This document shows positions 1,993-57,500 of a stretch of 64,000 bases of DNA, piece after piece. The notes below the pieces were generated by a model. That model ran no database searches. It saw only the letters and a program-made list of their open reading frames with translations, and was not told the origin of the DNA. Positions within the stretch are counted from its first letter, which is position 1; each line of letters opens with the position of its first letter. The stretch lies in NCBI GenBank assembly GCA_965644295.1, contig CBFFRP010000425.1, positions 62,001-126,000 of the forward strand, written 5' to 3'. The translations under genes were made by a program, and so were the position numbers. The stretch is from Paraphysomonas bandaiensis. Its lineage: Eukaryota; Protista; Chrysophyceae.

Positions 1993-2830
1993 TTCTTAAT
2001 TATCTACTCGATAGTCCTGTTAGTGCGTACAGTGCATCATATCATGCAACTAAATTACTGCTTAGTGCACATGACTGCAGCTCATTAACTCATATGGTAA
2101 CTAGACAATATACACAGCTAGATTGAGGTATATAATCTCAAGGAATTAACACGAGACGTTGCTTCTAAATGTTATCGTTATGTATGATAGAAGTCGCTGT
2201 CACACTGCTGTATGATATGCATGTATGTACAGACAGACATACAGACATACACTGCAGTGCACTTGTGTGTATAGGCAGGTGCTCTATATGTACAGTGTCT
2301 CAATAGCTTATTAAAAAGCCCAGAAGAAACTGCATATTTTCTATTATTAGAGTAATATCCGGGATTTACATTTATGTAGTGAAAGTCTTAAAAAAACGTT
2401 GTGTCATTATTTTTGTCCGATACTGTATGTATGTACACTCGTTGTAACGGTGAAAAACATAATTATCTGAGAAAATTCGATGTATATATCTACTTTCTGT
2501 ATAAACATGGGATATTTCATCAAAATATACTATAGAATATATAAACATGGCATTCTTGCGAAATATCATAAGAAATTGACCTAAAAATATGTGAAAAGCC
2601 AGTCACACACCATAATATACACAGCAGTACATGTATATGTATGGTGTTTGTACACCGCTGTATGTATCTATATCTGTATGTATCTGCATGTCATGGTGAT
2701 GGTATCATACAGCCAGATACGACTGTATGATATCAACCTGTGAGCGATATCTATACAGACGTACCATACACAACACTCCAAACTCTCATCTCAAAGAAAC
2801 TTGTGATAGAAACAGAAAGTGATCAATCTA

Positions 2831-4658
2831 ATGACAACTCATGCATCTATTGGCATCCATGATATTGGTGGAAAACTTGAATACGAACCCATTGACACTC
2901 GAGACCATCCGTTGCATTACTGGGAGCAGAGTATACATGCATTACTTGTTCTATTATCTCAAAAATCTCCACCACTACTAACAACAGACGAATTACGCCG
3001 CGGTGTGGAGTGTTTAGAGAAACATGCATATGAGACATGGGGCTATTATGAGAGATGGTCAGCTGCAATGGCTAATATACTATTAGAGAGACGCGTACTG
3101 CAAGAAGACGAATTGAGTTATGAATTGGAAGGTCCATGTGAATCACATGATTCTCCACAGCGGAAGTTTTATCCTGGAGATGCTGTACAAGTGAGAGTGA
3201 CATAGTGAGTTTATTTCTACGTTAAGGTGTAACAGGTGCGCTCTGAAGATTCTCGAATTCGTTGGAGAAAGCCTCACTTGAGATGTCCCGGATATATATT
3301 TGGCTGCATTGGAAAAGTTGAGAAATATATAGGTGAATATTTTATGTCTCTCTATTTGAAGAACTGTAGTATAAGAATATGAATGACTAGTTTTGTATAG
3401 GTCTCTTTGACGACCCGTATCTTGCTGCTTATCGAGGAAGTGGGCCACAACAACACCTTTATAGTGTGAGTTTTGACAGACGTGATTTATGGCAAGAGGG
3501 AGGCGACGAGATTTCACAGGGGGATCGTATTACTGTGGAAGTTTATGAAGGATGGCTCATGCCCCCTGTTGTAGAGCCTGTGGAAAAGAGCAATACTTTT
3601 TTCTCCAGCAACAGAGGGGTCGGAGTTGTTGGTAGTGGAGGAAAAACAACAAGTGACGAGCACACTCACGCTGACGAGCACTCTCTAACTTCTAGTGACC
3701 CTGTTCAGAGCAATATACGCCACACTCTTGATCATGACCATGGACATGTTCATGAGTCGCGAGTGGTAGTAGAGTGCGAGGCGGTGGAAAAAGAATCACC
3801 GGACCCACCTGGAAAAATTGTCGGGGAGGCACTACTTCGAGCACTATATAAGAAAAACGTGGTCAATCCCGCGGATATAAGAGAAAAAGTGGGTAGAGTA
3901 ATACCATGCCTTCAGTCATACATTTGTTTTGTAATATAAATGTCTGATACAGGTACAGACTTTGGAGCAAATGTCTGAGCGTTTGCTTGGGGCTGACCTT
4001 GTGGTAAAGGCATGGATGGATAGCGAATTTCGTACTCGTTTGCTTAATGATGGTGATACTACAATTTTTTTTGTGTACTGACCTAATCTATTGATTTATT
4101 TTAGCACCACGTGCTGCCCTGGAAATCGGAATTCACACTTCCAATTCTAATGCCCCAACTGTTCTGCAGGTATACGATACACGAATCACCCAATGGTGTT
4201 AATTTCAGGGTATCTCACGAATTCTATTTATACAGGTTGTAGAATGTACGGAATCTGTTCATCACCTCGTAGTGTGCACTCTATGCAGCTGCTATCCGTC
4301 CTCTCTACTCGGCTTATCGCCTTCCTGGTATGTAATATCTGCGCCTTTTATTTTGTAGTACGAACTTTACAAAGTTTCCGTACTCACTCTCTATTATAGG
4401 TATAGAAGCAGAAGCTATCGATGCCGTGCTATCCGTGAGCCTCGTAAAGTTTTATCAGAATTTGGAACCAAGTTTGACTCTTCCGTTGCGATACATGTTC
4501 ACGACTCTACTGCAGATTGCAGATTTCTGGTACTTCCAATGAGACCTGGGGGTACAGAAGGCTGGACCGAGGATCAACTACGCGCGCTAGTCACTAGAGA
4601 TTCTATGATCGGTGTAGCACTAGCGAGAGATCCATTGACTGTCGATCATAAGTCATGA
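2831..4658 (+). CDS. Fused beta-(His-rich linker)-alpha nitrile hydratase, cobalt type; 7 exons, ~486 aa
   Basis: Exons 2831-3190, 3236-3332, 3401-3888, 3953-4052, 4105-4169, 4236-4327, 4400-4658 total 1461 nt in frame. Beta motifs [22 protein letters not shown]. Alpha motifs [19 protein letters not shown] (CTLCSCY at 4275-4295), [44 protein letters not shown]. Confidence 0.95.
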
Positions 4659-5780: not shown

Positions 5781-6404
5781 TTACTTCTTAAATACTACAC
5801 ACAAATTATTTGCAGGCATTTCTGTAACAGAGTCCAAACTGAATCCACCTAGTTCACTAGCTGTCTCATGTACTAATTCCAAGTCGCGTACACCCCATTC
5901 TGAGTTGCGACTTTGTAGGCTTTTGTCAAAGGCGACGTTGCTCTCAACCATAGATCCTCGTACACGGTATGGACCGTATAGGAGGACCATGCCACCAGGT
6001 CGGAGCACTGCGCCAGCATTCCGAAACAGGGCTTTCGTGCAGCTAAAGGGTGATATATGAATCATATTAATACAAATCACAATGTCAACATTATTGTTTG
6101 CCATATCTGTCGGAAGAATATCACTACAGAGTGATTCAACATTAATATTTAACGGCCGGAAGACATGCGGCAAACTCTCATTCCAACTCGTTATGGATTC
6201 GATCATATCAGAGTCAGGCTCAGTGGGCTGATAACGACAGTTAGGTATATTAGATGCAAAGTGAGCCGCGTGTTCTCCAGTACCCGAAGCAACCTCCAGT
6301 ATATTGAGAGGCGTATCGGCTCTCTCTCGCAGTGAATCACAGCACTTACGGAGAACATCAAGGATAGGTGCTTTATTGCGAGATGCTGGACCACAGGCTT
6401 TCAT
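5781..6404 (-). CDS. DUF938 SAM-dependent methyltransferase (METTL26-like)
   Basis: Likely start MKACGPASRNKAPIL at 6404; the ORF extension upstream is simple sequence. Motifs LEVASGTGEHA, INMIHISP, LYGPY, SNVAFDKSL.SRN.EWGVRD, MPANN. Confidence 0.9.
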   Translation of the reverse strand: MKACGPASRNKAPILDVLRKCCDSLRERADTPLNILEVASGTGEHAAHFASNIPNCRYQPTEPDSDMIESITSWNESLPHVFRPLNINVESLCSDILPTDMANNNVDIVICINMIHISPFSCTKALFRNAGAVLRPGGMVLLYGPYRVRGSMVESNVAFDKSLQSRNSEWGVRDLELVHETASELGGFSLDSVTEMPANNLCVVFKK

Positions 6405-6812
6405 GTTGGATAGTGTGTGTGTAGATGTCAGAGGAGAGGATGGGATTGTGCTGTAGAGATATGGCTGTATGTATGTATGCTGTGCAGTATCCTGTCGAAC
6501 AGTATACAGGTACACGTCAGCAGGATGCATACGTACACAGTGTAGTGCGTGTACATGCTCATAGAACACTGTACCACACTGCACGGGTAATACAGAAGTA
6601 CGTGTTTGTCTATATAGAATGCTGCTGAAGACGTGTGTATGGTATACAGAACTCTGTATACGTATGTATACATGTAACAATATGTCGTGCAGAGTCATAC
6701 TCTGTATACAGAGGAATACATATAATATCATATCGCAACACTGGAGTGGATATTATGATTTGCATCATGGTTCAGCTATTCCATTTTGTGTCATGATAGA
6801 ATGGAATACGAC

Positions 6813-6853
6813 TAGGGATAGGGATAGGTATAGGGATAGGTATAGGGATAGGG
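6813..6853 (+). repeat. (TAGGGA/TAGGTA)n G-rich hexamer repeat
   Basis: tagggatagggataggtatagggataggtatagggataggg read directly; five GGG tracts. Confidence 0.9.
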
Positions 6854-7328
6854 TCGTCCTAATTGAAAATAGCCGAATTATGATAAATAGAGACATTGAG
6901 ACATGTACACGACGAGCTTTACAATACTACAGTTCGTATACATTGTATACAATGTATTCTGTTGAACGGTCTGTTGTTCTTTCTCAGTTTTCAAAAAAAT
7001 ATGACTGTTTTCTCGCATCACATATGAAAAACTATGTTTTCTTGTCACATCATAAAAACCTGTGATTTATAGAAGAAAATGAGGTATTTTGGGGGATTTC
7101 TGATGGCTTAAAATTGCAGTATTGACTGTTATGAGCAGCGAGCATTAACAGCAGGGTGTATATATGTATGTACATTACAATCCTATTGAGGTGTGAAGAA
7201 GCATTAAACTAAACAATCAAAGAGCTTATTACTGACATGTGTCCGCAAGATATGCATCGCTATAACTAACTGTCAGGCTGCTTATATACATAACGAATCG
7301 TTCCGCTGCTGTGTTTCGATAGAATTAA

Positions 7329-10300
7329 ATGGCAGTTGCTTGCAACGCTATTAAACATTCCATTCAATTGCATGTAATACCAGACATTGATTCATCTAAT
7401 GTGATCTGCAGTGTTCATGATGATGAATCCATTCTTGTCACTCAGAGGAAGGGATTGTGGTTAAAGTGTCACACACGCACTGTGTCTGGTTGGGCTCATT
7501 GTACGACACTCATTCCTGCGCATCTTCCTGCAACTTTTGTTGTAAATGATACTCTTCCGAAGGATGCAATGATTCGTCTGCGCACAGAACCAGTGGAAAT
7601 CGACAGTACTGTGGGAAATACTGTCTGCCCTGGCACGATTGTTACTGTGCTTGAAGTACAACCAGACTGGCTAAAGCTGCGAGTTAACGACGGTATTGCT
7701 TGGCTGAAAAGACAGGCGGGGAACATCCCCTTAGCTATTCCTGTTGTTCCTTCTTTGTATTATAAGAGTTCTGTGCTCCCTTCTGGCTGTGGCCTACGCC
7801 TTCGAAACGGCCCCTATGACGATGCTAGTGTGTCCCGAGTAAGTGAAAAAGATCACTACCTGGTTGTAGAGCGACGTGGCGGATGGGTTCGGGTCCTACA
7901 CTCTCCCAGAACTGATGACGAGGAATGGATGCTGACAAGCGCTGCGGACGGAACGGTTTTACTTTCACCAGCACCAGAGGGTGAAGAAGTGGGATTGATG
8001 TGCCTAGAGGCCTCACTTCCAGTTGAGGCCACAGTTCGAGTGCGCGAGCATCCAAGTGCAACTGCAGAGGAGGTGCGGCGAATAGGATATTATGATATTT
8101 TACCCGTCGTAAAAATAGAAGGGAATTGGGCATCTGTACTCTCTGACGCCTACACGGGCTATATAATGATGGCATCTGAAGAAACAATAATCCTCCAAAA
8201 ATTAGATCCGAACTCCGTGAAACATACAAAGACAGCAAACAGTGAGGACATAGTGTACTCCACTAAAAGTAGTGAACAAACCACTGCAATAACGGATAGC
8301 CTCGCACGACCCTCGCATCATCAGGAAACACAGCAAGATGAACCACCTAGAAGCAATGCATTTGATGATACACGTAAGTCACGTATGCTCCATGATATGT
8401 ATATGTTGTAATTGGTAGCTATTGTAGCTCTCCCTACGCAAGCATCGAATCATCAGGAAACACAGCACGATGAACCACCTAGAAGCAATGCATTTGATGA
8501 TACACGTAAGTCACGTATGCCCCGTGATATGTATATGTTGTAATTGGTAGCTATTGTAGCTCTCCCTACACAAGCATCGAATCATCAGGAAACACAGCAA
8601 GATGAACCACCTAGAAGCAATGCATTTGATGATACACGTAAGTCACATACGCTCCATGATATGTATATGTTGTAATTGGTGGCTATTGTAGCTCTGCCTA
8701 CACAAGCATCGAATCATCAGGAAACACAGCAAAATGAACCACCTAGAAGCAATGCATTTGATGATACACGTAAGTCACGTATGCTTCGTGATATGTATAT
8801 GTTGTAATTGGTGGCTATTGTAGCTCTCCCTACACAAGCATCGAATCATCAGGATACACAGCAAAATGAACCACCTAGAAGCAATGCATTCGATGATACA
8901 CGTAAGTCACATATGCTTCGTGATATGTATATGTTGTAATTGGTGGCTATTGTAGCTCTCCCTACGCAAGCATCGAATCATCAGGAAACACAGCAAGATG
9001 AACCACCTAGAAGCAATGCATTTGATGATACACGTAAGTCACATATGCCCCACGATATGTATATGTTGTAATTGGTAGCTATTGTAGCTCTCCCTACACA
9101 AGCATCGAATCATCAGGAAACACAGCAAGATGAACCACCTAGAAGCAATGCATTTGATGATACACGTAAGTCACGTATGCTTCGTGATATGTATATGTTG
9201 TAATTGGTGGCTATTGTAGCTCTCCCTACACAAGCATCGAATCATCAGGAAACACAGCAAGAAGAACCACCTAGAAGCAATGCATTTGATGATACACGTA
9301 AGTCACGTATGCTCCATGATATGTACATGTTGTAATTGGTAGCTATTGTAGCTCTCCCTACACAAGCATCGAATCATCAGGAAACACAGCAAGATGAACC
9401 ACCTAGAAGCAATGCATTTGATGATACACGTAAGTCACATATGCTCCATGATATGTATATGTTGTAATTGGTGGCTATTGTAGCTCTCCCTACACAAGCA
9501 TCGAATCATCAGGAAACACAGCAAGATGAACCACCTAGAAGCAATGCATTTGATGATACACGTAAGTCACATATGCTCCATGATATGTATATGTTGTAAT
9601 TGGTGGCTATTGTAGCTCTCCCTACACAAGCATCGAATCATCAGGAAACACAGCAAGATGAACCACCTAGAAGCAATGCATTTGATGATACACGTAAGTC
9701 ACGTATGCTTCGTGATATGTATATGTTGTAATTGGTGGCTATTGTAGCTCTCCCTACACAAGCATCGAATCATCAGGAAACACAGCAAGATGAACCACCT
9801 AGAAGCAATGCATTTGATGATACACGTAAGTCACATATGCTTCGTGATATGTACATGTTGTAATTGGTAGCTATTGTAGCTCTCCCTACACAAGCATCGA
9901 ATCATCAGGATACACAGCAAGATGAACCACCTAGAAGCAATGCAATTGATGATACACGTAAGTCACATATGCTTCGTGATATGTATATGTTGTAATTGGT
10001 AGCTATTGTAGCTCTCCCTACACAAGCATCGAATCATCAGGAAACACAGCAAGATGAACCACCTAGAAGCAATGTATTTGATGATACACGTAAGTCACAT
10101 ATGCCCCGTGATATGTATATGTTGTAATTGGTGGCTATTGTAGCTCTCCCTACACAAGCATCGAATCATCAGGATACACAGCAAGATGAACCACCTAGAA
10201 GCAATGCATTTGATGATACACGTAAGTCACGTATGCTTCGTGATATGTATATGTTGTAATTGGTGGCTATTGTAGCTCTCCCTACACAAGCATCGAATCA

Positions 10301-12950
10301 TCAGGATACACAGCAAGATGAACCACCTAGAAGCAATGCATTTGATGATACACGTAAGTCACATATGCTCCACGATATGTATATGTTGTAATTGGTAGCT
10401 ATTGTAGCTCTCCCTACACAAGCATCGAATCATCAGGAAACACAGCAAGATGAACCACCTAGAAGCAATGCATTTGATGATACACGTAAGTCACATATGC
10501 CCCGTGATATGTATATGTTGTAATTGGTAGCTATTGTAGCTCTCCCTACACAAGCATCGAATCATCAGGATACACAGCAAGATGAACCACCTAGAAGCAA
10601 TGTATTTGATGATACACGTAAGTCACGTATGCTCCATGATATGTATATGTTGTAATTGGTAGCTATTGTAGCTCTCCCTACACAAGCATCGAATCATCAG
10701 GAAACACAGCAAGATGAACCACCTAGAAGCAATGCATTTGATGATACACGTAAGTCACATATGCTTCGTGATATGTATATGTTGTAATTGGTGGCTATTG
10801 TAGCTCTCCCTACACAAGCATCGAATCATCAGGAAACACAGCAAGAAGATTTACACCGTGGGGTACCATTGGGAAGCAATGCATTCGATGATAAACGTAA
10901 TTTAATTTTTCGAACATGACCTGTGTTAAGTGTTGTTCTCCCAACAGCTCTTCCTAGCACCCATGTGGATGAAGAGGGTAACATATCCATGGGTAAGATA
11001 TGCATATGTATAGTGTGTTGTGACATAGTATCCAGAAGCCATCATTGCAGAAGAACTTCCATCAGAAGCTGGCCCTTATGGAAACATTTTGAATCTCCTT
11101 AACAGCTTTGTACGTGTCGTTATTAAGTTGTGAATTATTGTGACTGAAGTGTTGATACCATAGAGCTCACAAGAACAGATTGAAGGACTTAGACTGCTAC
11201 TTGGGTCGGTTACGTCTTACTGCAAAGGTGTCGGTGCTGATATTAAGAAGGCCCGAGAAGTATTTTCTGCTCTAGGTAGGTGTTGGTAAAATGTGCTACT
11301 CACGTTATGACTCTTGTATATTAGTTTCTGGCCTCTGTAGCTGTCTACAAGATGCAAACAGTCAAGTGATCGAGGAATCCGTGAAAACGCTGCTAGATAT
11401 ACAAGCCATAAACGATAAAGTTGAAGGTGCAATCATAGATACTACAGATGCCAGTACCATTTCGGGAATAATTGCTTCAAAACTCTTTGCGAATAAGACA
11501 TCAGATATTTTGCAAGACGTGTTCAAGAGTGCAAGTGAATTTCTCAGAGTATGCACCTTATCATGTCTCGTACGTCATTTGAGTGTTAACTTCGCATGTA
11601 TAGCGTTTTCCGATTGAGGTCCTTCCGCTTTTTTCTCATAGCTTACTCTCTAGAAATCCACACAGTGTGCTCCATGCCGTACAGTTACTACACAGCGCAG
11701 TAGGGGACGCATTGACTGCACAGAATATCAGTGACGATGAGCGCAATCCTCTTCTCTCAGAGTTTTTTCAAAGCCTTCTCTTCGTAATTTCTAATTCCAA
11801 GGTAGATTGTGTGTGTCAAGTGTGTTGCTGTGGTAACATGATTGTAGCCAAAAATGAGATCTTTGGCACTAAAGACATTGTCAAAGTCGTCGGCAGAGTG
11901 GCCCGAAGATATGAAGAGTATACTTCAAGGCGAGTTTGGGGATGTAGACGAAAAGCTCTTACAGCACCCTCAGGTGATGAATATTGTGATATTTGAAGTA
12001 GTATTAAGTTGTTGGTTGTTATCGTGCAGGTTGTTTGTTTATGTGCTACACTTGTCCGTGAAACCAAACGAACTGATGAATCTGTGGCCCTTGAAAGTAC
12101 ATCATCTGCACTTGGGAAAAGTGAAGATTCCCATTCTTCCCCGTCTGCTTCGGTGGCACGGTATCAGGTAGACGAAGCGCCTAAAAAGGGTGAAAATATT
12201 CATGAACCTCATTTGAGCCTAACAAAAGGAAGTGAATGTGCCGACGAGGAACCTCGGTTGCCTTCGGCTGCAGTTAATCGTACTCCTGTCAAAAGTTGTG
12301 AGGTAGTGGAGAGACCGGAGGTGCGATTCACACCGACGAATAGAAGTGAATGCGCCGAAGACGAGCCTCGATTTCCTGTCAAAAGCTGTGAGGAAGTGGA
12401 GACAACGGAGGTGCGGCACACACCATCTCCAACCCCCTTGGCAGAGGCGAATGTTGGTGCTTCGACAGTGGAACCCACATCACCACTCTTAGATGATATG
12501 TTCATTAGCTCATTTAAAGAATTGTTGGATAAGGAAGGGCAATCTGTGGATCTCACTCTCCCACTCTCGGATGATGAAGTTGCAAGGTTTGCATCTGGCT
12601 GCGCTGATGACTTTGCTGCTTTGGACACCTACATGCAGCAGATTGCTCGTGGTGATCCAGTACAACCAAGCCCTGTGTTCACTTATCCACGACGTGAATT
12701 ATCGAATGAAACTGAACTTGACCTGTGTAATTCTATGAAACCGTACTTGGAAGCTGCGAAAATGCAGAGCCGTATTAGCAAGATGCAAGATGTATTATTT
12801 GGGTAAGTAGCCGCACAATATATGTGATTGTGATTTATCTCGGTGTTGCTATACGTACGTAGGACGTCTACATTGAGTAGTGATAAACACAATTCTGTGT
12901 CATACCAGCCGGTTGATGAAGTGGATAGAGGATATTTCAACTTCAAGTGA
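7329..12950 (+). CDS. Multi-exon uncharacterised protein: four SH3b-like domains, a 26-aa repeat tract encoded by tandem exons, a HEAT-like helical region and an acidic/Pro-rich C-terminal part
   Basis: Exon 1 (7329-8373) has four LRxxP...V.....W..V....GW/Y units typical of SH3_3/SH3b. The frame continues through the 78-nt exons, then 10804-10896, 10948-10992, 11036 onward, and ORFs 11291-11617, 11667-11996, 11854-12171, 12009-12806. The last exon ends at TGA 12948-12950. Domain names are by motif recognition only. Confidence 0.7.
8316..10896 (+). repeat. Tandem array of 132-bp units, each a 54-nt intron plus a 78-nt exon (19 introns, 18 complete exons, one diverged 93-nt terminal exon)
   Basis: Period is 132: identical text at 8341, 9001, 9661 and 10321 (5 units apart). 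Introns GTAAGT...TTGTAG start at 8374+132n up to 10750. The exon encodes PLPTQASNHQETQQDEPPRSNAFDDT. Confidence 0.95.
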
Positions 12951-14084
12951 TATGCAGCGCAGATAGATAGATATATGTTACGGGTAGTAAAGTGTAATTT
13001 TGCCGAATTATTAATAAGTTGGATGTGTTATAACACGGATCTGATAATTAGTGATGCTTGACATTCTGCCCCATCCTTTATTAGTGTACTCAGTAGTACT
13101 TGATATAGGTCAACTACAGGTCCTAACTATATCGTCCCGCTGTCACAAGAGCTCAAGTTAACCATAGAAGGATACTAAAGCAATGGTAACTGTGAGGCAT
13201 TGAAGTTCATACATAAAGGTGATGATAGACGTCTAATATTGGAGCCACACGGCTCTTCTAGTTGTTATTAGTATCTTTACATTTATGTATGTTTCCAGTG
13301 CAACTGACTCGGAGGCTGTGTGCATGTGTGCACAGGGTCAGTCAGTCAACAATATACTATGGGATTGAAATTATATATATATGCTTCTTGCTACAATATA
13401 TTGATTACTATTTAGCAAAATTTGGCCTAGTTCTGTTGCGCAGTCCCACTCTCCTCAATCAGATGTTGCCTCTTTTGCACCATCACACTCCCTCTCGACT
13501 CCCTGTTGCTGGACACACCGGATGACCCTCATATCCCACCCCTGTCCAGCTATACCCTCTCTTGCATGTGCTCTCTACCGTTGGTTAAGACAGCAAAAGA
13601 GTCGATTTCGACGCTTCTTCACAGTAGGCCATAACCTTTTGCAAGACCTTCATCCACATACCTCCGAGCCACTTGGCACAATGCCTAAAGGAAGGCCACC
13701 AGATCGCCAATATAAGCAGGGTATAGTACTGTGTTCCCCTGGTTGCCGTGAGGTACATAAGGCAGTCCCCGATGCAAATTGCACACAATGTATGTGTAGT
13801 CTTAAGCGTTCCAGTGTTGAAGTAGTAGACTTAGATCACTGCTTTCACTTGTCATGCTGTACGTTGCACAACGTGTCCCCTACATACACATCTATCATAT
13901 AGCGCCGGTGAGTCCTAGGACACACGACAATGGCGAAACTCGCAATCAACATCAAGAACGGAAGTGGTCGCACCTTGGTGCTTGCGGCGACGCACAAGCA
14001 GCTTCTGTAGCGTTAAATAGTAGGATAAAGGAATTTGTGCTGATTAGTTATGGGTAGAGGTCTAACTAGTATGTCTAGCATTCA

Positions 14085-21088: not shown

Positions 21089-21155
21089 GGCTAGGGAGTG
21101 TGTGTGTGCATGTTAAGGGGGGTTCGACGAACATCTGACATCATGCCATCTATAT

Positions 21156-21590
21156 GTACATGTACTGCTGCTGACTGTGTATATATGTATGTACTGCTGT
21201 ACATGTACTGCTGCTGACTGTGTATATATGTATGTACTGCTGTACATGTACTGCTGCTGACTGCTTGCTGTGTATTTTTGTACTGAACAGATGGATGTAC
21301 TGCTGTACATGTACTGCTGCTGACTGTGTATATATGTATGTACTGCTGTACATGTACTGCTGCTGACTGCTTGCTGTGTATTTTTGTACTGAACAGATGG
21401 ATGTACTGCTGTACATGTACTGCTGCTGACTGTGTATATATGTATGTACTGCTGTACATGTACTGCTGCTGACTGCTTGCTGTGTATTTATGTACTGAAC
21501 AGATGGATGTACTGCTGTACATGTACTGCTGCTGACTGTGTAATGTGGATGTACTGCTGTACATGTACAGCTGCTGTATACAGCAGTACA
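21156..21590. repeat. Minisatellite of alternating 43-bp and 63-bp related units in a divergent intergenic region
   Basis: Core gtacatgtactgctgctgactg recurs about 8 times; the A and B units give a 106-bp higher-order period. Confidence 0.9.
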
Positions 21591-30245: not shown

Positions 30246-30527
30246 TGTCCTCAATTAACTTTTTCTGGTGTCAATTGAATAACAATACTGACTATGTATA
30301 GTAATCACCACCACTGACAGTGTATGGGTGATGTATACGTACAGATGCCCATGGTGTTATATATGTTAACCACACCTCACTCTAGAGCCCGCTACACACT
30401 ACCTTATTAACAACACAAGATGCTATTATTAAGTTAACTCCAATGGGGTTATATGGAGGGGGAATGAACCCAGGATGGAATGGTTTTAAAATGAAAGTGC
30501 TGAAGTACGCACACTGCTGTACGAACT

Positions 30528-30804
30528 ATGTATGTATGTGTGTATGTATGTATGTATGTATGTAGGTAGGTAGGTAGGTAGGTAGGTATGTATGTATGTA
30601 TGTATGTATGTATGTATGTATGTATGTATGTATGTATGTATGTATGTATGTATGTATGTACGTATGTACAGTGTATAGGTAGGTAGGTAGGTAGGTAGGT
30701 ATGTATGTATGTATGTAGGTAGGTATGTATGTATGTATGTATGTATGTATGTATGTATGTATGTATGTAGGTAGGTAGGTAGGTAGGTAGGTAGGTAGGT
30801 ATGC

Positions 30805-30837
<33 letters not shown>

Positions 30838-30960
30838 TGTATGTATGTATGTATGTATGTATGTATGTATGTATGTATGTATGTATGTATGTATGTATGT
30901 ATGTATGTATGTATGTAGGTAGGTAGGTAGGTAGGTAGGTAGGTAGGTAGGTAGGTATGC

Positions 30961-30993
<33 letters not shown>

Positions 30994-31055
30994 TGTATGT
31001 ATGTATGTATGTATGTATGTATGTACGTATGTACAGTGTATAGGTAGGTAGGTAC
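30528..31055. repeat. Compound (TATG)n/(TAGG)n microsatellite
   Basis: Direct reading. Interruptions tacgtatgtacagtgtatagg and ggtatgcatatatg each occur twice, indicating block duplication. Confidence 0.97.
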
Positions 31056-51592: not shown

Positions 51593-54500
51593 ATGCCCAC
51601 TAGAAAACAAAAGAAGAAGAATAAGAAGAAGAATTTATCCACGGACACATCTAAACAAGATATCTATGACATAGACGTGATAGATGAAGACGAAGAGCTC
51701 ACCAACAATAGAATTTCTAATGGAAATGATGTAAATCGTGAAGAGTCTGCTCCATCTATGGAGGAGGCAGATGATGTTCCAGTTCATGTTGAAAGTAGAT
51801 CGTCTAAATCTGGTCGTGAAGAGTCTGCTCCATCTGTGGAAGAGGCAGACGATGTTCCAGTTCATGTTGAAAGTAGATCGTCTAAATCTGGTCGTGAAGA
51901 GTCTGCTCCATCTGTGGAGGAGGCAGATGATGTTCCAGTTCATGTTGAAAGTAAATCGTCTAAAGCATCTCGTGGTCAGAAATCTGGTCGTGAAGAGTCT
52001 GCTCCATCTGTGGAGGAGGCAGATGATGTTCCAGTTCATGTTGAAAGTAAATCGTCTAAAGCATCTCGTGGTCAGAGATCTGGTCGTGAAGAGTCTGCTC
52101 CATCTGTGGAGGAGGCAGATGATGTTCCAGTTCATGTTGAAAGTAAATCGTCTAAAGCATCTCGTGGTCAGAGATCTGGTCGTGAAGAGTCTGCTCCATC
52201 TGTGGAGGAGGCAGATGATGTTCCAGTTCATGTTGAAAGTAAATCGTCTAAAGCATCTCGTGGTCAGAGATCTGGTCGTGAAGAGTCTGCTCCATCTGTG
52301 GAGGAGGCAGATGATGTTCCAGCTCATGGAGGCGGTGGATTGACCGAATCTGGTGTTCAGCAAAGTGCTATGGGTGATGAATCTATGCCGTCTGAAGATA
52401 CTAAAGACGGTGGCTTGTCTAATGGCTATACTGGTACTGACGATGGCGGTGGTGCTATCGAAGAGAAATATTCGGACATTGTCGGAAATAAGTCTACTCG
52501 TAGTAGTAGTGACACTGTAGATGGTACGAAGGAAACAGCTGTGGATAATAGAGTGTTTGTGGACTGGATAGGTGACATGGTTGGACGGCCAGTGCTGAAA
52601 GCAGCCGAAGTGGTGATATGTGAGATGATGCTTCTACATTCACGTAGTGAGGGCGGTTTGTGGCGGTGGGTGATGTCTCAGATAGACCGTTTCGATGAGA
52701 TCAGTAGCTCACATTCGGAAGATAAATCGGATGCATCCAAAGCGGTCATGGTGGACATCAACACTGTATTAGATATTTGGGAAATGGAGACAGGTGTGCC
52801 CCTTTCCTCAAGCGCAATATGTGCTCTGCATGTGCGTTGTGGTTCCCTTATGGTGAGTGCTCTGCGAGAGGTATCTGCCTTAAGTCATCCCCCACCTCCG
52901 GGGGAGATGACTCCTGCCGCTCTTCCCAGCGAACGTCCTGCCCTTCTCAAAAAGATTCTTGGCAGGTTCTGTGCAAAGAAAATTCAAGAACATTTGACTA
53001 GCTCTGGACAGGATGCGGTTCTTGATAAGCGCCTCTTATGGGGCCTTGTTGAAGAACAGGAATCTTTACTATCTCTCTGGTTGGTACAAATGTCTCGTAT
53101 CAGTCCCTACATTGCTGATTTGGGCGCTGATGCCAGCCTCCCGATTGACCAAGAGCTATTGAAAGGACTTGCTATGCGATTGGGTATGCCAGCTCTGAGC
53201 AAGGAGCTCTTACTGGCATTCTCAAATTGGGCTCTTCGTGGTGTAGGAACAGAGATTCGGTTTAACTCTGATGGCACTGAGAGACCTCCCTTAGTACAAC
53301 TACAGTTGGCTTGCGCGGCGAGATGCAAAGAAGGTGAAGTGAAGACAGTACAAGAACAAATGAATATGCTGGTGTGTCCATACTCAGGACATAATGCCGA
53401 TGGAATTCCATCACGGTCTCTGCTCTCACTTTTTTCGAGTGATTCTACTGGTGCTATGGCGGATGTGCCACTCCATATCTTGTGCAAACATTTGAGACAG
53501 GAGAAAAGCGACCTCACAGACAGATTTATAGGCACTTGCATTATGATGTGGACGGGACTGCAGTGGGATGTGGAGGATGGTGAAGGTGAGCTGAAAAAGG
53601 GGATAAACCTCTTGCGGTGTGGAATGGCGTCTACTAATGCGTCGGACTCGTCTATTCTCGTACAACGGAACACAGTAATGCAATTCTTATTTCCCTTCGG
53701 CGTCTCAATACGCGGTGTATCCGTACTTGGCAAAGGGTACTACAGTAGAAAACTCCAGCCTATCGATTCGACGGAGAAGCTGCACTCATTTCTTGCGAAT
53801 AAATTCTTCATGAAATTTCGCAAGACGTATTGCAGTGGCGAGGATGGTCGTAAACGAAAGATACCATCAGATGTGCGTATATACGCGTCTGACAGTGCGG
53901 GGGGGAGGGGGGAGGAGATTTTACCTTCCAAGAAGACTATTGTTGCAGACGTATGCGGCGAGGACGACATAATTTTTATAGAGTCTGCATATGTGTCCGA
54001 TTTTCATGGAAAACACTTGTCTACTATGGAGCCTGAAACAGAACATCCACCTAGTACAGGTGTTAAGAAAATTGCTGACACGCTTACCAAACCATCAGTG
54101 GTGACGATCAAACCTGCCAAACGCTTTGACAGAGAGTATGACACTGCCCACATGTGGAGTGTACCAATTGTTTGTCGATATCTCCGTGAAGTTGTTGAGT
54201 TATCGCAGTATGAAGAGAATTTCCTGCGGTATGAGATCAACGGATACGCTTTCTTGTGTTTGGATGAGCCGTCAGTGGTTAAATGCTGCGGAACTAAGAA
54301 CACGATCCATGCTGCAAAGATAGCACTACATGCCGGGAACCTCAGAACTTGCGTGTTGAGGACAGCTCTGGACTTCCTTCCGTCATCACTGGAGGAATGG
54401 CATCCAGTCCATGTCGCCGCCGTTGTGGACAGTGACTTTCATGCACCTGAGGCTGCCATTCAGATACTTCGCCATCAAATGGGTGGGGAGAAGATTGTGT

Positions 54501-57500
54501 CTCTAGGCCTCGAAAACATTCCTGGGGCTGTTCAAAAGTTTAAGTGTCGGTCAAGTGAAATTAAGCGATGTACTGATGGGTTACTTGAACTTCTTTCGAC
54601 ATACCATAAGATGATTAAGGTTAAATCAAAAGAGCAAATTACTGAGCATGTTGTACCTCCAGGGAAAAAGAGTTCCAATGCCAAAAAAGAAACCGCGATG
54701 GCGAGGAGAAAGAAAAAGATTGAAAATGAGATGAAGCAACGGCGAATTGAGGCGAAGGATACCCCACCTTACGGGATTATTGAGGCCAAAGCAGGACAAT
54801 CTATGGAAAGCAAAGATGTAATGCAGCCGACTGTACGCGGAACAGATGAAGAATCGATAGAACATAACAGTAGTGAATGCACGGAAGAAAACGGCGGGGA
54901 CGAAGGCGAATCACACGTGAGTTCTGAGGCGAGTACTGCGTTGACCTCTCCTATGCTGGCAAGAGATACGAGTGACAATTTTGTCGATGAGAAAGACCCT
55001 GAAAATGAATGTTTTGGTCATTGTCTTGCCACTCCAGAGAGTGTATTAGCGGCAAACACTGAAGGTGTCAAGAAATCCTTTGAGAATACTATTCATAAAC
55101 AACCGATAGAAAAGACACAACAACCCTCTGAAACCCGAGAAATGGATCGTCAATCTCGTCCTAGAGGGAAGAAGGTTAATAAATCACGTCCAACTGCACG
55201 AAATGAATCGACGACGACAAATTCTGAACAGCATGATCTTATTCTTGAGCAGATCAAGGCACTTCAGAATGTTGTCGAAACGCATTCATCTGTGGTTAAT
55301 ACGTTGAGGAAAGAGAATGAGAAGCTTCGCAAGGAAAAGCGCCGTGCTGAACTAAAGGCGAGACATCAGCAGGAAAATAAAACTAACGAGAATAATATTA
55401 GAGAATTGATAGAACAGAGAGATACCGCCGTGAGAACACTCGCAACAGTAGCTCAACATTATGTGGAAAATGTCAATGGTGACAGCGCTATTGTAGATGA
55501 TACTGTTGAAGGGAGTCCCAATGGAGAGAGTGTAATAGTATCACAACCAGACTATGCTGTTCCTGTTCCTATGCGCAATAACCATGAAGAGCCTTCGGTT
55601 ACTCGGACTTCTGGTTTACATGACTCCCTTTCGGAAAAATCAGTTACAGGAAGGAACACAAGGCGTAATATTGCGGAAGAAATAAATGTCCCACACGCAG
55701 ACCATTCTGCACCTGAGACTAGGCGCAATGACCACGAGAAGTTATCTATCAGTCATACATATAAAACACAGCACTCGCCCGTGGCTAATTCAGTTTCTGA
55801 AGGAACTATGCGCCGCACAGAAGGCAACGAGGCGGTATCGCAACTAGACTATGCTGTTCCTGAGTCTAAGCATCGTGATGTCGCACAGTTTATTAGTGGT
55901 ACTTCTTCTCGAACTTCTAACATGCATCGTTCTCCTATGTTAAAGTTAGTGGATTCCACCAAGGATCAGAGCATCACTGAGTTGATATTGGATGATTGTA
56001 CTGCTGAGTGTAGCTTATGGCAGAAAATTTTAGAGGTGTATCGATACGAGAAAGAGCCGCTGGATATTGGAAAATTCGAAGATGGCGGCGCCGTGTTTAG
56101 ACGTATTGCCATAGCATGGATGAGGCTTGGGAAAATAATGTTCGATGATGCCACTGGGCTCAGTGCAGGTGGTTATGGGCATAGTATAGCTTATGTACAA
56201 TATTTACTGATACTATGTACAGATTTGTCCTCAGCTGTTGAACCTGAAGTTATGGCAGGGGTGCTTCGCACCATTCACTCGAGTGTTGATAAGATAAGGG
56301 GAAATGCATCGCGTACAGTTCACAGCAGTCTTCCTGTATTTGCCCTTTATGCTGGACTTGTCTTCACACTGGTATTGGCGCATAAAATTCTTAGAAAGTT
56401 TTCATCGAGAAACGATCACGTCAACTTGACGGTACGCTATGCGTGCACTATATTACTTATGAATAAACTTGAAATCTCTACAGCAACTTCTGCGCAGCCT
56501 CCGCAGTGGTGATGCTTTTCCCATGTCAGAAGTATCTCGAGAAGATTTAAAGCTTTTTCTTGAGGAATGTTTTCTTATGGACTGTGAGAAGTGGCACCTA
56601 GTAAGTATACACGTGATATTTTATTTACACTCTAAATATATTGTGTAAGGTTAATTCCATTTGCTTGAAGTTTGAAGCCGACAGAAATGGCTATCTCAGC
56701 TTGTCCAGGGTTATCAGTTCCTTTGAGAATCTTAATTGTCTTCATATCCCACTGAAAAGTCATAGAGATGGTCAATTGGGAGTCGTGTTTGTTGTTTGTG
56801 TTGCAACAGCACAGATATTGTCATTCAAAATGCGCTTCAGTGATATCGTAAAGAAAATTATTGTTGATTATAGAAAAGTATGCCCGTCGTTTTCCGCTTA
56901 CCTAGTCGACAGTCGAAATGAAGAATACTTCAAATCTTGTACTTGCGATGCCAAGTACGCCTCAGAGTCCGCTATTATCGCCGATTTTCTGTACGTGATG
57001 TTGTGCAATTATTTCGGTTATGATGCAGACAGTTTTTCTGGAATTGGTCTGGGAACTTCCACATTTTCAAAGAAACCGGTTGCGAAGAATAATTACTTTG
57101 ACGAGGAGATCTCTGTGAATAAAACAACTGTTAGCACTCCACTCACGTCCAACCCACCATATGTATCATTCATTGTATCTAACATTAGGCCTGTATGCAG
57201 TGCAGTGGCTAGAGCATTTTTTCTATACGACTACACTTCTGAGAGACGGCGGCAATGTGTATTTGATAGTCTTCTCACTCTTATTGTTACGTTTGTCGAC
57301 TTTTGGTCGAAAAGCCTGCTTGATTGTACAGATTCATCTCGCGAGATGTCAAGAAAGTTTAACCGAATTCTCTCTGATCTAGACGAAAGACTATGTACTC
57401 TGATAGGGACAGAGAATGCATCCAGTATTAGAGAAAGGTCTCACGACTTAAACGCAAAAGGAATGGAAAATTTGGTGTCCGAACTAATTGGAATTCCTCT

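Follow-up and report, generated by a model that had tools for sequence, protein, structure and literature searches.

A gene on the forward strand of the window (the whole stretch of 64,000 nt from Paraphysomonas bandaiensis that was analysed) carries 19 copies of a unit composed of a complete intron and a coding exon, and we conclude that this array is very probably a young internal tandem duplication, that is, a minisatellite expansion within an orphan protein-coding gene present once in the genome, and that the duplicated segment contained an intron beforehand.

Anatomy of the array and its gene

The features on which the analysis is based are the following.

7329 to 12950, forward strand: whole gene, 28 exons and 27 introns, 1393 amino acids, TGA stop at 12948-12950
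7329 to 8373, forward strand: exon 1 (1045 nt), open from the ATG at 7329, N-terminal head with bacterial-type SH3 domains (PF08239)
8313 to 10846, forward strand: tandem array (Tandem Repeats Finder: period 132, 19.2 copies, 96% matches)
8374 to 8427, forward strand: array intron 1 of 19 (54 nt), identical in sequence to intron 18 (10618-10671)
8428 to 10749, forward strand: exons 2-19 (18 full 78-nt phase-1/phase-1 exons) and the 17 introns between them, placed by script, with the junction seen in RNA contigs
10750 to 10803, forward strand: array intron 19, the last copy (joint from 10749 to 10804 in RNA run X13, GT..AG, 54 nt skipped)
10804 to 10896, forward strand: exon 20 (93 nt), a repeat copy that is older and has diverged, from alignment and translation
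10897 to 10947, forward strand: intron 20 (51 nt), with the weak donor GTAATT (joint from 10896 to 10948 in X13)
10948 to 10992, forward strand: exon 21, the old right-hand flank, starting with CTCTTCCTA (PLPS..), with homology to the beginning of the repeat exon
10993 to 11035, 11110 to 11163, 11276 to 11324 and 11549 to 11603, forward strand: tail introns (RNA contig joints)
11802 to 11847, 11974 to 12029 and 12803 to 12862, forward strand: tail introns, continued (RNA contig joints)
11036 to 12950, forward strand: exons 22-28, a predicted folded region (about amino acids 860-1100), then a predicted-disordered acidic region and the C-terminus (RNA joints, charge-hydropathy classes)

The unit of 132 nt consists of a 54-nt intron and a 78-nt exon, repeated head to tail with 0% indels (Tandem Repeats Finder score 4655). 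By script, the donor context CGTAAGTCAC was found 19 times, at a spacing of exactly 132 nt every time, and the 19 introns lie at 8374+132k (k=0..18), each starting with GTAAGTCAC and ending with GCTATTGTAG (GTAAGT..TTGTAG type). The 18 exons, at 8428+132k, are all in phase 1/1 and translate in phase 1 as PLPTQASNHQ(E/D)TQ(Q/H)(D/N/E)EPPRSN(A/V)(F/I)DDT, with neither a stop nor an indel in any of them. Since each unit is a whole intron of normal size plus 78 nt (26 codons, phase 1/1), every copy can be spliced independently and the mRNA stays in frame. If the array is instead read unspliced, a TAA is reached 12 codons into the intron frame, and none of the six frames has an open stretch longer than 43 codons across the array, so that the array can code only if it is spliced. 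The first-pass annotation, which had placed 19 introns and 18 symmetric exons at 8316-10896, was correct in both coordinates and counts by Tandem Repeats Finder, script and translation; the symmetry that it assigned to the exons also holds, all being 78 nt long and phase 1/1 in a full model that is in frame.

This model, of 1393 amino acids, remains in frame through all 27 introns, namely the 19 of the array and 8 downstream introns supported by RNA. The 8 introns outside the array measure 43-60 nt, which makes an intron of 54 nt ordinary in size for this gene, and each of the seven tail introns is seen as a GT..AG joint in the RNA contigs of 2-3 runs. A search of the 62.6-Mb assembly gave the gene as a single copy without paralogues, and the array locus without a second haplotype.

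Splicing in RNA

Four runs were used, all in the form of k-mer contigs: the RNA of two cultures (X13 and X9), a polyA metatranscriptome (X16) and a DNA run (X1). The proposal that the unit is a complete splicing module is supported by the removal of the 54-nt segments in RNA contigs of X13, X9 and X16, and by the lack of any such joint in the contigs of X1. In X13 the evidence is the joint listed above for the last array intron. A contig of X9 has the exon end at 10749 joined straight to the exon start at 10672, and record 11 of X16 places its letters 1-73 on 10677-10749 and its other 35 from 10672 onward. In none of the three RNA runs is there any depth over intron 18, which shares its sequence with intron 1, and RNA contigs connect the array with the exons downstream of it. 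The junction between exon 1 and exon 2 is identical in sequence to the generic array junction, and the RNA joint is common to both.

The depth of the junction contig relative to the adjacent single-copy contig was 20.6 in X13 (169.7/8.24) and 20.1 in X9 (1734.6/86.3), where full inclusion is expected to give 19, these ratios being rough, as they are contig means from 3'-biased libraries. Values of about 20 in two cultures would fit the inclusion of essentially all repeats. One could alternatively imagine a length-tunable spacer, in which the number of symmetric exons skipped would differ and the resulting proteins would carry 2 to 20 repeats. The layout of the array would allow this, as phase-1/1 exons with identical splice sites let any donor join any acceptor without a frameshift, and stochastic variable-number splicing of a tandem-repeat gene has been described for human UBC (PMC10809524). 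In X16, moreover, the junction contig had only 1.3-2.6 times the depth of the tail contigs, but depth in this run is very low and falls 2.8-fold from 3' to 5' along the tail, whereas the ratio of about 20 in the X13 and X9 cultures fits near-complete inclusion. Introns of 54 nt are recognised across the intron, in the manner of intron definition, which also speaks against skipping. In eukaryotes other than animals, intron retention is believed to predominate, and exon skipping is less frequent in unicellular holozoans than in bilaterians (PMC6142364). No skipping was seen, although it would be invisible in the contigs, because skipped and unskipped junctions share one sequence. Weighing these points, we regard tuning by splicing as quite improbable, and near-complete inclusion as the more probable state of the transcripts.

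Origin of the array

Both edges of the array lie inside exons and enclose a complete intron. On the left, the last 61 nt of exon 1 form a first, partial repeat copy, corresponding to positions 18-78 of the exon consensus with 1 mismatch. On the right, exon 20 follows the consensus for its first 43 nt, continues with 15 additional nt and divergent sequence, and ends in SNAFDDK. Intron 20 shares the position and phase of the array introns and is unrelated to them in sequence (no more similar than shuffled sequences, p 0.59); X13 shows it spliced out, and a contig of X9 retains it (record 16, which runs through 10879-10991 ungapped).

As the edges and the older diverged copy are preserved, the steps of the process can be reconstructed, with the ancestral state read from the array edges alone, because no orthologue was found. 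The ancestral gene would have contained two older diverged copies of a segment of about 26-31 amino acids ending in NAFDD(T/K), each followed by a short phase-1 intron and then by an exon starting with PLP(T/S). The two similar exon stretches lie 132 nt apart, and misaligned recombination or replication slippage between them would then have duplicated a 132-nt segment made up of the last 61 nt of an exon, the 54-nt intron and the first 17 nt of the exon after it. Unequal exchange together with conversion may have expanded and mixed the unit to 19 copies. The mass intron gain by tandem duplication that had been suggested from the sequence is well founded in that the gene has obtained 18 extra introns; 18 of its 27 introns come from one amplification series.

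The presence of many identical introns within one gene might also bring to mind a mobile intron (introner), a class of element common in aquatic protists (PMC9860276), or the creation of introns de novo from duplicated exonic AGGT, since introns can arise through tandem duplication of an AGGT-bearing exon segment (PMC3443670). Introner or transposon-driven gain was rejected because the 132-nt unit, intron included, has no match outside the locus, all 20 of its 20 BLAST matches in the whole 62.6-Mb genome falling at the array. The Rogers model of AGGT intron creation was rejected because the intron sequence is unrelated to the exon and the unit encloses a complete pre-existing intron. Furthermore, the duplication begins and ends within exons, and an intron of matching site and phase is already present in the older copy, from which it follows that the array introns descend from an intron that was there before. 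We therefore consider either form of new intron creation extremely unlikely, and retain the duplication of an intron-bearing segment as the explanation.

Variation among copies and copy number

Variants are distributed over the units as a mosaic, without decay over distance (r 0.06, p 0.30), and two neighbouring units are identical. Nucleotide diversity (pi) is 0.055 in introns and 0.021 in exons, with exon variants rarer than intron variants (Mann-Whitney p 0.011), a difference that derives from 17 variable sites, of which several are linked or located at CpG; introns and exons do not differ in their proportion of variable columns (Fisher p 0.61). The splice and branch regions are invariant across the copies.

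The copy number of 19 is taken from the assembly alone, the k-mer contigs of the runs being of a kind that collapses repeats. An array that is real but was collapsed or inflated in assembly is one way to account for this number, as repeats of 132 nt that are nearly identical pose difficulties for assembly, only 0.81 of the sampled words occur in the best DNA run, and the contig depths of X1, when summed over the array, amount to between 18 and 74 times the depth of single-copy sequence. We discarded this summed depth as an estimate of copy number, since it is uneven and summed depths are not copy numbers. The units, on the other hand, are each marked by a particular set of variants in a fixed order, without Ns or breaks; the X1 bins with a single contig layer give 19.8 (625/31.5) and 18.1 (571/31.5) times the single-copy depth, and the RNA depth ratios are likewise about 20. 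An assembly artefact appears unlikely.

A separate matter is whether the length varies at the DNA level, with unequal crossover causing the copy number to differ between alleles or strains, and with selection perhaps acting on linker length or motif number. Continuing exchange is indicated by the combination of 96% identity among 19 units, mosaic variants and two identical neighbours, and in SmPoMuc, which has comparable exon-intron arrays, the number of units differs from one individual to another (PMC2576457). The lower depth ratio in X16 would also agree with such variation, but X13 (organism code A) and X9 (code B) both give about 20 and thus show no difference where the data are best, the assembly lacks a second haplotype of the locus, and no related contigs were found among the metagenome contigs. 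On this evidence, we would give variation in copy number about an even chance.

Genome context and searches for relatives

In-frame coding minisatellites are common in this genome, accounting for 4 of the 5 arrays in a 243-kb sample. It is conceivable, though on balance doubtful, that the array is the showpiece of a genome-wide habit in which minisatellite expansion is frequent and often seeded at exon-intron junctions, multiplying introns or inflating them with copies of their own splice sites, and in which repeat number may vary between strains. If true, tandem duplication would be a major and ongoing force on intron number and length in this lineage.

A word-based protein search with exon 1 gave no match at E <= 1e-3 among proteins of 191-609 amino acids, and an exact look-up of 8 open reading frames of the window in the protein collection found none of the 8. 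The metagenome contigs, from which records of this genome may have been excluded, contained neither relatives by the exon 1 protein nor a match to an IUPAC pattern of the intron and its flanks. Rfam returned nothing at E <= 1 for 6800-13400, so that the introns carry no known small RNA.

The encoded protein

The protein is predicted to consist of an SH3b head, about 520 amino acids of acidic disordered repeats, a folded region and an acidic C-terminal part. An SH3b-like head had been proposed earlier, and this assignment is upheld by PF08239 (SH3_3), which covers two stretches of exon 1 with 60 bits against a gathering cut-off of 27 (E 2.6e-16), and by the neighbours of exon 1 in the ESM Atlas, all of which are SH3b clusters. 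An AlphaFold model of exon 1 made without an alignment had a mean pLDDT of 33.6 and was unusable. The start of the protein does not resemble a signal peptide.

The repeat region, of about 520 amino acids, has a net charge of about -77, is rich in P/Q/D/T and is predicted to be disordered. Its product may be a flexible acidic linker with about 20 NAFDD..PLP motifs, connecting the SH3b head with the C-terminal part. Pfam gave nothing above threshold for the tail exons or for one repeat, and the C-terminal exon had no usable match in the ESM Atlas. Hints of a HEAT/ARM-type helical repeat protein (TIP120/CAND1, GCN1 N-terminal) in the tail fell below the gathering cut-offs (TIP120, E 0.06-0.08, 13.3-13.6 bits against 25.9; GCN1_N, E 0.12, 12.6 bits against 26.3), and this candidate is a lead only.

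Comparison with known systems

The array had been put forward as an undescribed system, a claim that does not stand, since exon-intron cassette arrays coding for protein repeats of variable number are already on record in SmPoMuc (PMC2576457) and in the Argiope MaSp2 and flagelliform spidroins (PMC9779670). In exon 2 of the Schistosoma mansoni SmPoMuc genes, a small exon and its flanking intron are arranged head to tail in up to about 20 units per gene, with intronic parts more than 94% identical, and the protein carries a tandem repeat of variable number; for these genes, unequal crossover or gene conversion has been discussed as a source of concerted evolution (PMC2576457). The SmPoMuc unit is nevertheless about 1 kb long (a 27-nt exon with long introns and a microsatellite) compared to 132 nt here, and SmPoMuc is a multigene family encoding secreted glycoproteins, whereas the present gene is single-copy and lacks a signal-peptide-like start. 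Repeat-number variation and aberrant splicing are documented and trans-splicing is proposed for SmPoMuc (PMC2576457).

Spider silk genes (Argiope MaSp2 and the flagelliform spidroins) share the iterated introns and the correspondence of one exon to one protein repeat, and the authors note that alternative splicing would alter protein length only (PMC9779670). Their units are larger and encode structural fibre motifs, unlike the array here, and their introns are homogenised as much as the exons or more, whereas the introns here are 2.7 times more diverse than the exons (PMC9779670). Human UBC is similar in being a tandem-repeat coding gene whose number of units can vary through splicing from one repeat boundary to another, but there the repeats themselves are removed via AGGT sites at the monomer borders (PMC10809524), whereas here dedicated 54-nt introns separate the repeats and variable isoforms were not seen.

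That introns can multiply when a gene undergoes internal duplication is already recognised, and the review PMC3443670 includes this route, citing Gao & Lynch 2009. As that work is cited there, intragenic tandem duplication spanning an existing intron adds introns without a new splice signal, as in the present gene, although the cases appear to be mostly single duplications, compared to one unit amplified to 19 here. The array is therefore a compact further case of a known process and involves no new mechanism. It offers a clean snapshot of one gene gaining many introns at once without new splice signals evolving, and illustrates how a long disordered multivalent linker can arise quickly in an orphan protein. 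Next to the schistosome, spider and human examples, its value is that of a documented case in a little-studied marine heterotrophic protist and of a pointer to a possible genome-wide tendency.

Anatomy and splicing of the array

Tandem Repeats Finder reports a single array (period 132, 19.2 copies, 96% matches, no indels, score 4655), and the donor context CGTAAGTCAC, located by script, occurs 19 times at a constant spacing of 132 nt. Both match exactly the layout of 19 introns and 18 exons in an intact frame that the first-pass annotation had read from the sequence:

7329-12950, + strand: repeat gene, 28 exons
8313-10846, + strand: tandem array
8374-8427 to 10750-10803, + strand: 19 array introns of 54 nt each, starting GTAAGTCAC and ending GCTATTGTAG, separating 18 array exons of 78 nt, phase 1, without stops or indels, encoding PLPTQASNHQ(E/D)TQ(Q/H)(D/N/E)EPPRSN(A/V)(F/I)DDT
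10804-10896, + strand: exon 20
10897-10947, + strand: intron 20, 51 nt

The unspliced array carries at least one stop per unit in each of the six frames, the longest open stretch being 43 codons, and the coding frame run into an array intron meets a TAA after 12 codons in every case, so that the array can be coding only if it is spliced. We placed contigs from four runs, three of RNA type and one of DNA (X1), on positions 10540-12900. A contig of X13 has a GT..AG joint from 10749 to 10804, which is precisely array intron 19, and in contigs of X9 and of X16, a polyA metatranscriptome, the exon end at 10749 abuts the exon start at 10672; in X16 record 11, the first 73 letters match 10677-10749 and the other 35 continue on the exon start, with zero gap. 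None of these joints is present in the X1 contigs over the same positions, which supports the earlier claim that the 54-nt segments are spliced. Intron 18 (10618-10671) has no RNA coverage, the whole RNA depth of its bin being explained by exon letters, and since array introns 18 and 1 are identical in sequence, contigs retaining intron 1 are absent as well.

The same RNA contigs run on into the tail exons, which places array and tail in one transcript, and reveal eight more GT..AG introns of 43-60 nt downstream of the array, making 54 nt an ordinary intron size in this genome. Chaining all 27 introns gives an open frame of 1393 codons from the ATG at 7329 to the TGA at 12948-12950, a strong internal check on the gene model. 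The X1 contigs lack one base at each of 11629, 10676, 10808 and 12224; at 11629, in exon 25, the entire X1 depth is without the base, which is present in all three RNA runs as it is in the window. These gaps look like homopolymer errors of noisy reads and not real frameshifts.

Intron 20, which has a weak donor, GTAATT, is removed in X13. In X9 it is kept in the sole covering contig (record 16, 10879-10991, gapless), at a depth like that of its flanks. When the intron is retained, the frame meets a TGA 7 codons on, which would yield a tail-less protein of head and repeats; splicing of this intron is possibly inefficient or regulated.

Number of repeats in mRNA and DNA

Skipping within identical repeats is invisible in contigs, and we therefore used k-mer depth as a rough count, full inclusion of all exons corresponding to 19 generic exon-exon junctions per transcript. 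In X13 the depth is 169.7 for the junction contig and 8.24 for the single-copy contig next to it (ratio 20.6), and in X9 the two values are 1734.6 and 86.3 (ratio 20.1). The two cultures have different organism codes, and both are consistent with inclusion of nearly all exons and with similar copy numbers. The low ratio in X16, a low-depth metatranscriptome (1.3-2.6), is unexplained, and is not counted as support for shorter forms because depth already falls 2.8-fold along the tail toward the 5' end. In the DNA run, two single-layer array bins have 19.8x and 18.1x single-copy depth and other bins up to 74x, summed contig depths not being equal to copy numbers, so that the genomic count of units is that of the assembly.

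Introns of 54 nt are expected to be recognised across the intron. Outside animals, the prevalent form of alternative splicing is believed to be the retention of introns, and skipping of exons is less frequent in unicellular holozoans than in bilaterians (PMC6142364). Regulated exon skipping is thus a priori unlikely, and the proposed tuning of spacer length by splicing is unsupported and improbable; tuning by copy-number change would be plausible.

Domains of the encoded protein

Exon 1, 348 aa: bacterial-type SH3 domains (PF08239, 60 bits, two stretches; Atlas neighbours all SH3b)
Repeat region, 521 aa, following exon 1: nearly all P, Q, D, T, N, S, A and E
Post-repeat region, about aa 860-1100: predicted folded; HEAT-type Pfam hints, all sub-threshold
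C-terminal part: acidic region, predicted disordered, then a short C-terminus

With a net charge of -77 and a GRAVY of -1.75, the repeat region falls beyond the charge-hydropathy boundary, on its disordered side. By eye, the N-terminus has no hydrophobic signal-like stretch. The 62.6-Mb assembly has one copy of the gene and no paralogues, and no relatives outside this genome were found by comparing exon 1 with 191-609 aa proteins, by ORF look-up or in metagenome contigs. Immediately upstream lies a divergently oriented neighbour, a DUF938-type methyltransferase (PF06080, E 1.3e-59; 5781-6731, - strand).

Variation among units

Of the 132 columns 17 are variable: 8 among the 54 of the intron and 9 among the 78 of the exon. 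Three of the exon changes are synonymous and 6 are conservative replacements. Intron and exon do not differ in the fraction of columns that vary (Fisher p 0.61); the variants themselves are less frequent in the exon than in the intron (Mann-Whitney p 0.011), and pi is 0.021 for the exon and 0.055 for the intron. Invariant intron blocks are donor positions 1-9, ATGTTGTAATTGGT, which likely contains the branch site, and the final ten bases. The units are mosaics of these variants, and at intron sites 10 and 44 (1-based, within the intron) all four combinations are found. Similarity between units shows no decay as their separation grows (r 0.06, p 0.30); units 9 and 10 have the same sequence. Such a pattern would be expected of a young array whose units still exchange, with weak purifying selection acting on the peptide; at so few sites, the selection signal is only suggestive. 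Changes of CpG to or from TpG/CpA occur in 6 of the 17 variable columns (8374-10803; e.g. CACGTA/CACATA, TCGTG/CCATG), which hints at CpG hypermutability in the gene body and possibly at cytosine methylation.

Origin of the array

Both array edges fall within exons. Exon 1 ends in 61 nt that match repeat-exon positions 18-78 with 1 mismatch. Exon 20 follows the consensus over its first 43 nt, then departs from it, has 15 extra nt and retains SNAFDDK at its end. Intron 20 shares codon position and phase with the array introns, its sequence similarity to them being no higher than that of shuffles (p 0.59), and the start of exon 21, CTCTTCCTA (PLPS), resembles that of the repeat exon. An older duplication thus seems to have already left two similar stretches of exon, 132 nt from each other and separated by an intron, and it is from this pre-existing intron that the array introns descend. 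The two stretches may have misaligned to give the first additional unit, and further units could have followed through unequal exchange. Creation of introns out of exon sequence with a duplicated AGGT (see the review PMC3443670) was considered and rejected, as the copies trace to a pre-existing intron, and so was introner spread (PMC9860276), as the 132-nt unit has no match beyond its own locus in the 62.6-Mb assembly. The array is a case of intron multiplication through internal gene duplication; the exonic edges, the older copy and the locus-restricted unit support the earlier view that many introns were gained by tandem duplication.

Genome context

A sample of 243 kb, consisting of the window and a further 179 kb, holds five arrays with a period of 30 or more and three or more copies. 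Of these, four are in-frame coding minisatellites (periods 63, 78/96, 120 and 132 nt), so that such arrays seem common in this genome, and only the 132-nt array has an intron inside its unit. With introns of about 50 nt every few hundred bases, some minisatellite units will contain one. The other three are:

51736-52328, + strand: periods 78 and 96 nt, 96-99% identity, in-frame, intron-less unit, within an ORF of 1639 aa (51593-56512)
8300-8916 of L027, another stretch of this genome: 120 nt x 5.1, 98%
739-1005 of L022, likewise another stretch: 63 nt x 4.2

The window also holds a (TATG)x126 microsatellite (30527-31033) and, between two genes, a complex non-coding minisatellite (21155-21576, periods 43/63/106/149). 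A nitrile hydratase gene of beta-alpha order (2819-4650, + strand) has a beta-subunit N-terminal domain (PF21006, E 2.7e-15) and, by eye, alpha-subunit-like sequence further along the same strand, interrupted by short introns. The whole assembly contains about eight full-length silicon-transporter (PF03842) ORFs and giant cadherin-repeat ORFs of 3000-4600 aa; a chlorophyll a/b-binding protein was not found in it. Together with the nitrile hydratase, these features point to a silica-forming heterotroph among the protists, perhaps a loricate choanoflagellate.

Comparison with known systems

Arrays in which whole exon and intron units are repeated in tandem, and which encode variable numbers of protein repeats, are already established (PMC2576457, PMC9779670). 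In SmPoMuc, a 27-nt exon and its flanking introns form genomic repeats of about 1 kb, of which a gene has up to about 20, with more than 94% identity and in variable number (PMC2576457). In Argiope MaSp2, and earlier in flagelliform spidroins, near-identical small introns separate similar-sized exons, and the authors noted for MaSp2 that only length would change through alternative splicing (PMC9779670); in human UBC, splicing includes repeat units stochastically (PMC10809524). Since the SmPoMuc and spidroin cassette arrays precede it, the suggestion of an undescribed system does not hold. The present array differs from SmPoMuc, the spidroins and UBC in the extreme compactness of its 132-nt unit, in its host, a single-copy orphan protist gene, and in having introns that are more diverse than its exons.
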